Shown here one piece after another: positions 50,978 to 53,900 of a stretch of 64,000 nucleotides of DNA. This DNA comes from Macrostomum lignano (Eukaryota), in NCBI GenBank assembly GCA_002269645.1, contig NIVC01000873.1:62001-126000 (forward strand), written 5' to 3'. The position numbers and the translations under genes were made by a program. The notes below the pieces were generated by a model. The model was not told the origin of the DNA and made no database searches. It saw nothing but the letters and a program-made list of their open reading frames with translations. Numbering within the stretch: position 1 is the first letter of the stretch; every line of letters starts with the position of its first letter.

Positions 50978-53900
50978 ATGCCGAGGAGCAGAGTCTGGGC
51001 GCAGCTGCTGCTGCTGCTGACGTGTCTGCAACAATTGCATCATCAAGTTCTTGCCCTAAGCGTTGGCAGGCCAACAGGATTTAGCAGCATTGGAGCCGAT
51101 AACCTGCCTGACGGACTCGATCAGTCAGGTGAGATATTGAACTTGAGATGCCCGCTTTGTTCATTGAGCAGCAGAGAAAATAAGGGAACTGAATCCGAGA
51201 GAGAGAGAGAGAGAGAGAAAGAGACAGAGAGAGAGAGAGAGAGAGAGAGAGAGAGAGAGAGAGAGAGAGAGAGAGAGAGAGAGAGACATAGAGAGAGAGA
51301 GGAGGGCACCTCCAATCCTCCAATCTCAGGCCCTGACACGGTTGAAAGGACTGAACAAAGTCAATTTAGTTGGATTGCCGATATTTCAAATATTGTATAT
51401 TCTTTGTCAGGGCTGGAAGCATGTAAAATTTATTTGGCGCGAATTGCCGTCAATATATAATGGCGATATCGCCAGGGAGAGATGATCGATAAATAGGTGT
51501 GCACAAACACTTAAAACAGTACGCATGGCCAGTAGTACATTAAAACGAGTCTGAGACTCTGAGAAAGCGGAGGGGGTGGCTAAAACTGTACAAGTGGGGC
51601 TAAACGACCTTTAAGTGTAGGATAACAATTGTAATATAAAAGGCAAAATAAATAGACAAGGTAAATAAAAATTATCAAATGCTCAGACCAAAAAAGGCAG
51701 GTGCACCGTACACAGTGTCAGAAAAAAGAAAAAAAATCAGAGAAAAAAAATCGAAATATTATATTAATATTAATATTAATTAAAATATAGAGAGAGAAAG
51801 AGAGAGAGAAAGAAAGAGAGAGAGAGAGGGAGAGAGAGAGAGAGAGAGAGGGAGAGAGAGGAGAGAGAGAGAGAGAGAGAGAGAGAGAGAGGGAGAGAGA
51901 GGGAGAGAGAGGGAGAGAGAGGGAGAGAGGAGAGAGAGGGAGAGAGAGGGAGAGAGGAGAGAGAGGGAGAGAGAGGGAGAGAGAGGGAGAGAGAGAGAGG
52001 GAGAGAGAGGGAGAGAGAGAGAGAGAGAGAGAGAGAGAGAGAGAGAGAGAGAGAGAGAGAGAGAGAGAGAGAGAGGGAGAGAGAGGGAGAGAGGGAGAGA
52101 TGGAGAGAGAGAGAGAGAGAGAGAGGGAGAGCCTCCAATCCCGAGGGCGCCGACACGGCAAAGCAACAAGACAAACAAAAAAGTTCAAAAGGAGTTAGTT
52201 GCAGATATTTCGAATACGAAATTCTTCGTCAGGGCAAAAATGAATATTTTTTTTAAATGAATAAATGAATATAATTATTGTGAGAAGCCGACAAATAAAT
52301 ATAAGCGAAAAGTGGGGGGAGGGATCGCGCAAGTGCATACTGTATGTACATCAACTATGAGTCAAGAATCTAAATTCCAAAACCGGTTGGCTAAAGCGAG
52401 ATTGCGCAATACAGTGGGCCTTCAAAGGTTAAATAAATGAAAACAAATAATAAAGAGCAAAATGAACTGAGTCAACACAGAATAATAAAAAGTAAATAAA
52501 TAAGTAAGTAAATAAATAAATAAGTAGAGTGAAAGTGCACCATGCACGGTGTCACTCAATTGGCAGAAGCTGGTTCGAGCTGGCTGTGGCAGAGCAGATC
52601 CCGAAGGCTCCTCCCTTTAGTGAAGGCCGGCAGTACAGGGGCATCGCAGTGCCGTGCCAAGCCGTCCTTCACCTTGGCAACCAGGGTGTCAGAACCCAGC
52701 GCAGTGCGGCACAATCAGTGGGATCGCCGGATTGTGCAGCACCCCGGCCAGCTCGTTGGCGCCATTTGGGACCAGAGTCTTCAGGACCGCGATGAGTTTG
52801 GCTTCCTGACGTTGACGTCGTTCGTTGGCCTTGGATCCAGAGCCGTCTCCGTCCACACTCCGGTGGTGAAGGCGAAGTCCTCATGGCCATCGTTGCTGAA
52901 GTGGCGGGCCACCGGAGTGTCGCGTGCGTGGCTGATGTCGCCGACGTGCGCTAGCATGCGGCGCGTATGCTGTTATATACGCGGACCGTCTCGCCGACGT
53001 AGACCGTGCAGCTGCAGCGGCGGCAGAACACCGTGTAGACGGCGTTGACCGAGTTGCAGTCGATCCTCTGGCTGATGATGATCTTGACGGTCGTGGACGC
53101 GGATCCCGGGCAGACGGAGGTGAACCTGGCGTGCGCCTGGCAGCACTTGCACAGCCGGCCCGGGTTGCACGGCAGGAAGCCGAACTCCCACGCCTTGTCG
53201 GGTAGAAGCCCAGCTCCGCCAGCAGACAGACAGAGAGAGAAGAGAGAGAGAGAGAGAGAGAGAAGAGAGAGAGAGAGAGAGAGATAGAGAGAAAGAGAAA
53301 GAGAGAGAGAGAAAGATAAGAGAAAGAGAAAGAGAGAAGAGAAGATAGAGAGAAAGAGAAAGAGAGAGAGGACAGAGAGAGAGAGAAAAAGAAAGAAAGA
53401 AAGAAAGAAAGAGAGAGAGAGAGAGAGATAGAGAGAAAGAGAAAGAGAGAGAGAGAAAGATAGAGAGAAAGAGAAGAGAGAGAGGGACAGAGAGAGAGAG
53501 AAAAAGAAAGAAAGAAAGAGAAAGAGAGAGAGAGAGAGAGAGAGAGAGATAGAGAGAAAGAGAGAGAGAGAAGAGAGAGAGAGAAAGATAGAGAGAAAGA
53601 GAAAGAGAGAGAGAGAAAGATAGAGAGAAAGAGAAAGAGAGAGAGGACAGAGAGAGAGAGAAAAAGAAAGAAAGAAAGAGAAGAGAGAGAGAAGAGAGAG
53701 AGAGAGAGAGAGAGAGAGAGAGAGAGAGAGAGAGAGAGAGAGAGAGAGAGAAGATAGAGAGAAGAGAGAGAGAGAGAGAGAAAGAGAGAGAGAGAGAGAG
53801 ATAGAGAGAAAGAGAGAGAGAGAGAGAGAGAGAGAGAGAGAGAGAAAGAGAGAGAGAGAGAGAGAAAGATAGAGAGAAAGAGAGAGAGAGAGAGAGAGAG

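Follow-up and report, generated by a model that had tools for sequence, protein, structure and literature searches.

Two truncated Penelope-like elements with minimal hammerhead motifs inside a (TC)n array of Macrostomum lignano

A 64,000-nucleotide (nt) stretch of the genome of the flatworm Macrostomum lignano (contig NIVC01000873.1, positions 62,001 to 126,000; hereafter the window, numbered from its first nucleotide) contains two fragments of Penelope-like elements (PLEs), which we named unit A and unit B. Both lie within one 3.3-kb (TC)n array in identical orientation, and both carry a minimal hammerhead motif of the PLE type. They are two independent, diverged, 5'-truncated copies of two related families in direct orientation. 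They are probably old insertions of PLEs of the Neptune/Nematis type, in which the endonuclease (EN) is C-terminal, inside a single (TC)n/(GA)n array. The locus consists of the remains of two transposons, both dead, and no function for the host is evident. New in this work is the PLE example in M. lignano; it was already established that PLEs contain hammerheads (2014) and have a microsatellite bias (2006, 2021). We found no published description of M. lignano PLEs, and a (TC)n-associated PLE is not mentioned in the PLE literature consulted, in which no dedicated search for one was made.

RESULTS

Two diverged PLE copies alternate with three (TC)n tracts. Read on the minus strand from 54482 to 51197, the locus is composed of tract U, unit A, tract M, unit B, and tract D; all element features given below are on this strand. 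Tract U (53224-54482; 1259 nt with T-rich variants) was delimited by Tandem Repeats Finder (TRF), composition, and block structure, and tract M (51789-52131; 343 nt, C-rich, mostly (CCCTCTCTCT)n) and tract D (51197-51301; 105 nt, nearly pure) were delimited by TRF. Unit A (53223-52132) comprises the relic of an open reading frame (ORF) and a 3' untranslated region (UTR), and unit B (~51788-51302) was recognized by its alignment to unit A as a 3' UTR-only copy. All parts listed by a first-pass annotation of this DNA were recovered on the minus strand, with positions that agreed exactly or differed by a few bases. Its description of the units as tandem and perhaps retrozyme-like did not hold: the many indels between A and B and the (TC)n tract that separates them do not amount to a tandem of pseudo-long terminal repeats (pLTRs), there are no tandem repeat units, TRF detected no repeat of unit length, and the hammerheads (n=2) sit on diverged units. 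A pLTR, or a partial tandem or inverted arrangement of the same element, was not seen at the locus; this does not exclude PLE membership, because truncated solitary copies are common for PLEs. A second copy of either family was not present in the window.

Unit A retains the C-terminal end of a PLE ORF. Three-frame translation, tblastn, and blastn revealed a coding relic (52557-53223) containing a linker, a GIY-YIG EN, and a C-terminal extension of ~60 amino acids (aa), and ending with a TGA stop codon (52559-52557). It covers the final ~220 codons of a PLE ORF and is disrupted by several frameshifts and two stops. A zinc-finger-like linker, CX5CxxC, was found by translation upstream of the EN (53140-53169; motif as defined in PMC8557442), and translation and alignment with relatives placed the GIY-YIG core with its PLE-specific internal CxxC at 52987-53043. 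Downstream of the core, after a frameshift, an H-x5-H motif (AHVGDISH) is followed by the R...E...N part of the endonuclease. Unit A thus shows the CCHH arrangement (CxxC within the GIY-YIG core and two histidines downstream), which is conserved in all relatives. The extension (52745-52560) ends with ...LEPASAN directly before the stop. We also observed that all relatives (P0001, P0003, P0005, P0007, P0009, P0011-P0014, and P0017-P0020) have an extension of ~60 aa after the EN, with the pattern ..P-I/L-I/V-L-P-H/Y .. K-V-K .. A-F/Y-T-K/R-x-R-S/N-L-R/K-x-L-L.. For Neptune and Nematis, we found no description of the post-EN extension that is kept in these relatives.

A HMMER search of 1.84 billion representatives yielded 2358 relatives of the unit A EN. 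The closest, P0001, shares 71-73% of its residues with unit A over 220 aa and 78% at the nucleotide level (tblastn/blastn; E=1e-149). It originates from a 1.2-kb Logan contig (L001), in which an RT (reverse transcriptase) fragment, LRYIDDIFGVW, lies immediately upstream of an intact EN. The EN is C-terminal in the full-length relatives P0007, P0014, and P0017, and linker and extension are common to all; the CX2-5CxxC linker was also detected in P0001, P0005, P0007, and others. Pfam RVT_1 was matched above the cut-off by P0007 and P0014, and Pfam GIY-YIG by P0014 and P0017 (weakly by P0001; E=0.006). The stitched unit A relic had no Pfam match. A profile search with alignment A3 in a set of 5.8 billion proteins gave 5 matches, and when metagenome contigs were scanned with protein pattern A2, none of the 164 pattern matches was confirmed. 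Neither an RT relic nor a full-length element nor a pLTR was found anywhere in the window. Because of the missing RT relic, unit A is regarded as 5' truncated directly against (TC)n, with the truncation point in the RT-EN linker. Judging from the linker motif, unit A would be of the Neptune or Nematis type or belong to a sister group.

Further EN fragments were noted in M. lignano gene models. At least two close relatives, P0008 (A0A1I8GKI4) and P0010 (A0A1I8FP47), are host gene models (ankyrin-repeat and collagen IV, respectively) that end in EN fragments and are probably chimeric annotations; P0002, P0004, and P0006 look similar to these. Three more close relatives have neighboring UniParc numbers, and therefore the family is multicopy in the M. 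lignano genome.

Both units carry a PLE-type hammerhead, with an intact core in A and a mutated core in B. Hammerhead A was matched by covariance model R1 (see below) at 52193-52243 with 39.6 bits (E=2.8e-9); its core is located at 52235-52204. The sequence is uuGCC-CUGACGA-A-GAAU(UUCGU)AUUC-GAA-AUAU-C/UGCaa (slash, predicted cleavage site). Helix I is formed by GCC (52235-52233) and UGC (52203-52201) and is followed by core positions C3 to A9 (52232-52226), a bulged A (52225), stem II (52224-52221 with 52215-52212), GAA (52211-52209), the helix III sequence AUAU (52208-52205), and C17 (52204), with the predicted cut at 52204/52203. The catalytic core (CUGACGA...GAA...C17) is intact. The 1.1/2.1 pair of helix I is mismatched, as is also the case in 3 of 97 related hammerheads.

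Hammerhead B (model match 51369-51421, core 51413-51380; R1, 28.1 bits, E=6e-6) has the sequence GCC-CUGACAA-A-GAAUAU(ACA)AUAUUU-GAA-AUAU-C/GGC. Here, GCC (51413-51411) is followed by CUGACAA (51410-51404) with an A at position 8 (51405), a bulged A (51403), stem II (51402-51397 with 51393-51388) with a G-U closing pair (U at 51388), GAA (51387-51385), AUAU (51384-51381), and C17 (51380). The changes G8 to A and C11.1 to U are both transitions at CpG dinucleotides of A. While the catalytic core is intact in A, it is broken in B by the C3/A8 mismatch. Since mutations of C3 or G8 abolish the cleavage by a PLE hammerhead, in which G8 is essential (PMC11167929), hammerhead B is, judging from its sequence, probably inactive. 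The natural U3-A8 covariant keeps this pair, whereas B has C3 opposite A8; B differs in this respect from the known hammerheads (PMC4209133), and its core counts as broken. The minimum-free-energy fold of hammerhead B consists of helix I and helix II.

Despite these differences, the two motifs agree in their architecture. In line with the first-pass annotation, they differ in sequence but stem II pairing is kept (GAAU/AUUC in A and GAAUAU/AUAUUU in B), and both end with AUAU-C, being GAAAUAU-C in A and in B. The suggested search pattern CTGAnGAAG fits A but fails on B (CUGACAA), the mutated core of which had been overlooked. The nucleotide between A9 and G10.1 is a bulged A in both, and the G10.1-C11.1 pair is G-C in A and G-U in B. 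The palindromic helix III, GAA-AUAU-C, is present in both copies. The dimer gains calculated by cofolding were small (-3.4 and -4.3 kcal/mol) and by themselves do not predict a double hammerhead. These sequence features, together with the covariance model matches in both units, supported the proposed identity of the motifs as minimal hammerheads of the PLE type in which helix III is the palindrome AUAU.

The locus resembles the minimal PLE hammerheads described by Cervera & de la Pena (2014; PMC4209133) in several respects: they are of type I, with a CUGANGA...GAAA core and a short helix I, have one unpaired nucleotide between A9 and G10.1 and a G10.1-C11.1 pair, and their helix III is reduced to a palindrome, implying dimeric action. 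Moreover, they are located in the 3' UTR or pLTR of PLEs, with most genomic copies on truncated elements. Stem II usually has 6-8 bp in that collection but only 4 bp in hammerhead A.

Related hammerheads covary and are linked to PLE ORFs. Metagenome contigs were scanned with the pattern GCCCTGANGAAGN{8,18}CGAAATATYNGC, which was designed from hammerhead A and from contig L004. The scan returned 125 motifs in 119 contigs, of which 97 were distinct when flanks were included. From these 97 hammerheads, the covariance model that had been called for was built (R1) and run unfiltered over the 64-kb window. Only A and B were significant; the next best match had 13 bits (E=0.13). In the unconstrained part of the 97 sequences, compensatory changes were found in 5 of the 6 pairs of stem II. 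Helix I showed them in 2 of 5 pairs, with pair 8-53 switching between G-C and U-A. Paired cells amounted to 92%; the figure was 74% for shuffles and did not exceed 51% for slid controls.

The expected link between hammerhead and PLE ORF was borne out by the EN relic of unit A itself, which lies ~322 nt from its hammerhead, and by eight independent metagenome loci, in which a hammerhead of the same type follows an EN ORF on the same strand at a distance of 150-384 nt. L004, a contig of the JGI metagenomes with a 52%-identical relative, has an intact motif with a 6-bp helix I 340 nt after the ORF. The second pair of stem II is A-U in A and in B and G-C in L004. The metagenome motifs often occur as head-to-head inverted pairs, an arrangement typical for PLEs (PMC8557442). 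A same-strand pair, 179 nt apart, was found once (L006). Viral contigs scanned with the hammerhead pattern gave zero matches.

More broadly, the hammerhead type GCCCUGAnGAAG...CGAAAUAUYGGC was observed to be common to the flatworm copies and to more than 100 environmental or host-associated metagenome contigs of several families (L006-L124), with names beginning with Ga0126336_, Ga0126343_, or Ga0099818-21_, of the form OFE...01..., and others.

The Rfam hammerhead models (RF00163, RF00008, and RF02275-7) had no match in the window, neither at the gathering threshold nor at E<=10. As a control, Rfam was applied to L004, L007, L008, L018, and L045, and it also missed the intact motifs in these contigs. 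The Rfam silence is uninformative, because intact relatives are missed too; the models do not cover this helix-III-less class.

The 3' UTRs share conserved islands and similar ends. The 3' UTR of unit A (52132-52556; 425 nt) includes an AT-rich (TTTA/TTAT)n stretch detected by TRF (52526-52484). A conserved box, TGACACCGTGCATGGTGCAC (52535-52554), lies directly after the stop codon, and its counterpart in unit B, TGACACTGTGTACGGTGCAC (51720-51701), marks the start of homology to unit A. Exact or near-exact copies of the 20-nt consensus, TGACACyGTGyAyGGTGCAC, are limited in the window to A and B. Fold predictions suggest that the box may form a small hairpin (z = -2.7 in unit A, not significant in B). 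In unit B, an AT-rich noncoding leader (51788-51721) precedes the box. Where unit B aligns with the unit A 3' UTR, ~71% of the columns are identical, and indels are numerous. Islands of conservation are the post-stop box, a few short blocks, the hammerhead, and the end motif CCGTGTCrG...GAGATTGGAGG.

The terminal motif is CCGTGTCGGCGCCCTCGGGATTGGAGG in unit A (52158-52132) and CCGTGTCAGGGCCTGAGATTGGAGG in unit B (51341-51317). In unit B, a second ATTGGAGG plus TGCCCTCC follows, extending to 51301, and the sequence preceding (TC)n is ...ATTGGAGGTGCCCTCC. The duplicated ATTGGAGG + TGCCCTCC is possibly a "tail." Counted from the predicted cleavage site, the insertion ends after 72 nt in A and after 71-79 nt in B. 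The terminal segments of 72-78 nt showed no significant conserved RNA structure (z ~0). A GCCGT box 3' of the hammerhead was also considered as a shared signal and was rejected: it has a fixed position in only three related metagenome families, and its likeness to CCGTGTC may be coincidence.

Both copies lie inside (TC)n, and microsatellite association is family specific. In both copies, (TC)n is present on the sense strand at both ends, and the precise 3' ends (ATTGGAGG...) coincide with the (TC)n border. A microsatellite bias of PLEs is documented, and the CX2-5CxxC linker was proposed as its determinant (PMC8557442); a preference of the two families for (TC)n is plausible. Among the relatives, L004 runs into (CAGT/CATT)n without a sharp border. 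We also noted a metagenome (TA)n family (L008, L029, L050, L056, L067, L082, L086, and L091) with the stem II sequence UCUUUUA/UAAAGA. It has two alternative 3' termini ~33 and ~82 nt after the hammerhead, ~48 nt apart, which by analogy would fit the two reverse transcription starts and the "tail" of the Anolis PLE discussed below. The largest metagenome family (42 copies) has no microsatellite. The association with microsatellites is family specific, as already reported for PLE clades.

Marker counting resolved tract U into six copies of one composite block, (TTTC)n..CTGTCC..CTATC..(TC)n. Most of tract M is made up of 10-mers of CCCTCTCTCT, and its last ~45 nt resemble tract U. Such block structures are a signature of slippage or unequal exchange, and therefore the tracts grew by their own block duplications. 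No further element remnants were found in the (TC)n tracts. Consequently, the idea that the elements expanded the GA/TC array was not supported. The related idea of a family that repeatedly inserts into (TC)n is plausible in that both copies lie inside (TC)n; however, there are only two copies in one array, and most related families have no microsatellite. Beside (TAC)n, beside (GTCT)n, or upstream of the (TC)n array, no further element ends were found in the window.

The array lies between two genes. A giant gene with cadherin repeats (FAT-like) and long exons is located on the minus strand (14400-41540). Its first coding exon (~44810-44870, minus strand) encodes the signal-peptide-like MAAFRAALLLLSVLIG and is followed by gtaagt. 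On the plus strand, a Sushi-like gene has gene-model matches from 55.5 kb on (55.5-62 kb). The GA/TC block looks to be positioned between these two divergent genes, as intergenic or 5'-flanking DNA; it may also be set in a 5' UTR intron. The first-pass annotation had offered the PLE family as an explanation for a GA-rich intron, but no intron is evident, the nearest plus-strand gene-model matches being those at 55.5-62 kb.

According to TRF, tandem repeats make up ~11-12% of the window and GA arrays ~2.7%; simple and tandem repeats constitute ~15% of the M. lignano genome (PMC5730564). Other arrays in the window are a (TAC)n microsatellite (45893-46833; ~314 units, 99% purity), which gives rise to poly-T, poly-S, and poly-V ORFs of >300 aa in all frames, and minisatellite or satellite arrays at 55010-55402 (20-nt unit), 57497-57798 (24/122), 58520-61547 (40 nt x76), and 62618-63351 (37). 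The 24-mer array (57497-57798) is inside the Sushi-like ORF 56875-57906. An identical ORF of 548 aa (window 1764-3410) is present on NIVC01000873.1 and NIVC01003649.1 of the M. lignano assembly Mlig_3_7 (GCA_002269645.1), reflecting the known redundancy of the DV1 assembly. UniRef matches also pointed to M. lignano.

An empty site was not found: the duplicate contig NIVC01003649.1 covers no more than the initial ~14 kb of the window, exact look-ups of the ORFs 56875-57906 and 52542-53048 for an allelic or paralogous site gave no record, and a homology search with the neighboring Sushi-like ORF returned UniRef models only.

DISCUSSION

Insertion of two Neptune/Nematis-type families inside one (TC)n array accounts well for the protein motifs, the related 3' UTRs with conserved and covarying hammerheads, and the position of both copies. 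Both copies are likely nonfunctional, the ORF of A being frameshifted and the core of B carrying G8A and C11.1U. Several points weigh against this explanation. The clade was assigned by motif and not by phylogeny, unit A having the linker and the window containing no RT. The R1 match on A is partly circular, as the gathering pattern was modelled on A; this does not apply to B, which fails the pattern. In vitro, cleavage by the minimal hammerheads of metazoans is poor (PMC4209133). For the (TC)n preference, there are only two copies, both in the same array, and given the ~15% of repeats in M. lignano, chance colocation is not negligible. A microsatellite was found beside metagenome hammerheads downstream in 9 of 122 cases and upstream in 11 of 115, and most families have none.

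The array itself adds two further points of this kind. Tracts U and M, which flank unit A, share almost no variant types, as exemplified by the CCC counts (17 in the 343 nt of M versus 4 in the 1259 nt of U). Furthermore, an exact 9-nt direct repeat, TCAGTTCCC, which extends to TCAGTTCCC(C)TT, brackets the whole (TC)n/PLE block, with the upstream copy at 54486-54494 and the downstream copy at 51184-51192 (minus strand). It looks like a target-site duplication; when the 30-nt flanks were shuffled 2000 times, its score was reached 12 times. Tract differences and a bracketing repeat are not predicted by simple insertion into a preexisting homogeneous array.

One alternative is that there was no targeting, two PLE fragments having accumulated in repeat-rich, weakly constrained intergenic DNA, with (TC)n reflecting coincidence or tolerance. 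The genome-wide and local repeat content, the many hammerhead-bearing metagenome families without microsatellite association, and the sample of two would agree with this. However, with GA arrays at ~2.7% of the window, two independent hits have a probability of ~7e-4 under uniform insertion, and the two copies are oriented alike with respect to the TC strand, each with its precise 3' end at the (TC)n border. Moreover, two related families (L004 and the (TA)n family) end exactly at microsatellites, and a bias toward microsatellites is documented for linker-bearing PLE clades (PMC8557442). We therefore consider untargeted accumulation unlikely.

Alternatively, the microsatellite may not have been the target but may have come with the element or been seeded by it. 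This could have occurred via a (UC)-rich 3' RNA tail, derived from read-through into the donor flank or encoded by the element (...GGAGG-CUCUCCCUC / UGCCCUCC); the telomerase-related RT would then prime on purine-rich microhomology and stutter, and the planted (TC)n seed would expand later. Such a route would explain why the TCAGTTCCC bracket resembles a target-site duplication, and why the (CCCTCTCTCT)n variant tract starts 5 nt after the end of unit A and differs from the tract 5' of A. The ...ATTGGAGGTGCCCTCC end of unit B before (TC)n and the end of L004, which grades into (CAGT)n, also point in this direction, and EN-minus PLEs are known to have telomeric repeats, as the reverse complement, at the 3' end (PMC8557442). 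Yet (TC)n is also found at both 5'-truncated ends, and A, which is cut in the middle of its ORF, needs preexisting (TC)n upstream. Furthermore, the block duplications of U and M are typical of host slippage or unequal exchange, so that the tract differences need no element; the direct repeat is only 9 nt long and was noticed post hoc; and in the Anolis PLE, reverse transcription starts internally and without homology to the target (PMC11167929). On balance, seeding too seems improbable.

In a wider form of this idea, the PLE lineage itself plants microsatellites, each insertion seeding (TC)n, or (CAGT)n and (TA)n in sister families, which the host then expands. In that case, the founding insertion would have left TCAGTTCCC as its target-site duplication, and the 3.3-kb block would have arisen at a site previously without microsatellite. 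To this generalization we give rather little credence.

Still less probable is that unit B is a nonautonomous, UTR-only PLE derivative, similar to a retrozyme or a short interspersed element (SINE) and mobilized in trans, or that A and B are a single composite insertion. The homology in B starts exactly after the position of the A stop codon and is preceded by the AT-rich noncoding leader, non-LTR (long terminal repeat) retrozymes were proposed to be derivatives of PLE pLTRs (bioRxiv 10.64898/2026.07.22.740005 and PMC7229834), and L006 has two same-strand hammerheads 179 nt apart. But B is present here in single copy and without tandem repetition, and copies made by target-primed reverse transcription are normally 5' truncated, at any point. 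For a composite insertion, A and B are too different, with only ~71% identity and 343 nt of (TC)n between them.

Finally, chance matches without ribozyme ancestry are effectively refuted: Rfam detected no hammerhead in the window, and folding of the 51-53-nt segments gave no significant z-scores, but Rfam misses intact motifs of relatives as well, the covariance model matches (E=3e-9 and 6e-6) have no other significant counterpart in 64 kb, and the motif is the best-conserved island of diverged UTRs and recurs with compensatory changes 3' of EN ORFs in unrelated contigs.

Insertion of two related PLE families inside (TC)n thus remains our preferred explanation, and it can be compared with known systems. 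Neptune and Nematis elements (Arkhipova 2006 via Craig et al. 2021, PMC8557442) share with unit A the C-terminal GIY-YIG EN with CCHH and with the locus the CX2-5CxxC linker and canonical hammerheads, and a bias for microsatellite targets is reported or hypothesized for them. The microsatellites mentioned in the PLE literature consulted are (TA)n, (CA)n, and (C)n, whereas our locus has (TC)n.

Naiad and Chlamys elements, associated with (TA)n and with (CA)n or (C)n, respectively (Craig et al. 2021), abut the microsatellite with their 3' end, as here, which makes target-site duplications unreadable. Like the metagenome (TA)n hammerhead family, they resemble the locus in that the microsatellite preference is specific to the family. 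In contrast to unit A, however, their EN is N-terminal, they are mostly without canonical hammerheads, and their repeat motif is not (TC)n.

A second useful comparison is Poseidon PAc of Anolis carolinensis (Frangieh et al. 2024, PMC11167929), in which reverse transcription starts internally, ~85-92 nt after the hammerhead cut. In PAc and at our locus alike, the insertion end is at a fixed distance of 70-90 nt from the hammerhead cut site, predicted in our case, which is consistent with internal initiation. Likewise, the optional short "tail" at the end of PAc has parallels in the extra ATTGGAGG+TGCCCTCC of unit B and in the two termini of the (TA)n family. PAc differs in belonging to the Penelope/Poseidon clade, which is without the CX2-5CxxC linker, in that its hammerhead overlaps the ORF start, and in cutting AT-rich DNA (5'-ATT-3') and not GA/TC.

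The UTR-only unit B also resembles non-LTR retrozymes, which are noncoding and have type I hammerheads related to those of PLE pLTRs. Retrozymes, however, are composed of one short unit that is repeated in tandem, with one hammerhead per unit, and form circular RNAs (Cervera & de la Pena 2020, PMC7229834; Li, Clavereau & Pollet 2026 preprint). In contrast, the locus has two diverged single units with a microsatellite between them, one of which is attached to an ORF relic.

Based on these comparisons, we propose how the active parents of units A and B may have inserted. A multimeric or read-through RNA would be bound by the RT-EN protein, and the GIY-YIG EN, perhaps guided by the CX5CxxC finger, would nick (GA)n/(TC)n DNA. 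The hammerhead would act as a dimer, since the 4-nt AUAU helix III needs two copies, and, probably assisted by protein, would trim multimeric transcripts. Reverse transcription would start internally, in the terminal region ...CCGTGTC...ATTGGAGG located 70-90 nt after the hammerhead, and its frequent abortion would yield 5'-truncated ("dead on arrival") copies. In this scheme, the target preference, ribozyme activity, and the priming site are inferred.

A dedicated covariance model for this hammerhead type, which Rfam does not detect, would improve annotation. If the association is confirmed genome-wide, these PLEs would provide a tractable system for studying how microsatellite targets are chosen by the CX2-5CxxC/GIY-YIG module or by the RNA 3' end. 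In that case, M. lignano, in which transgenesis is possible, could also serve as an in vivo test of the importance of PLE hammerheads, and the share of retroelements in its high simple-repeat load could be measured.

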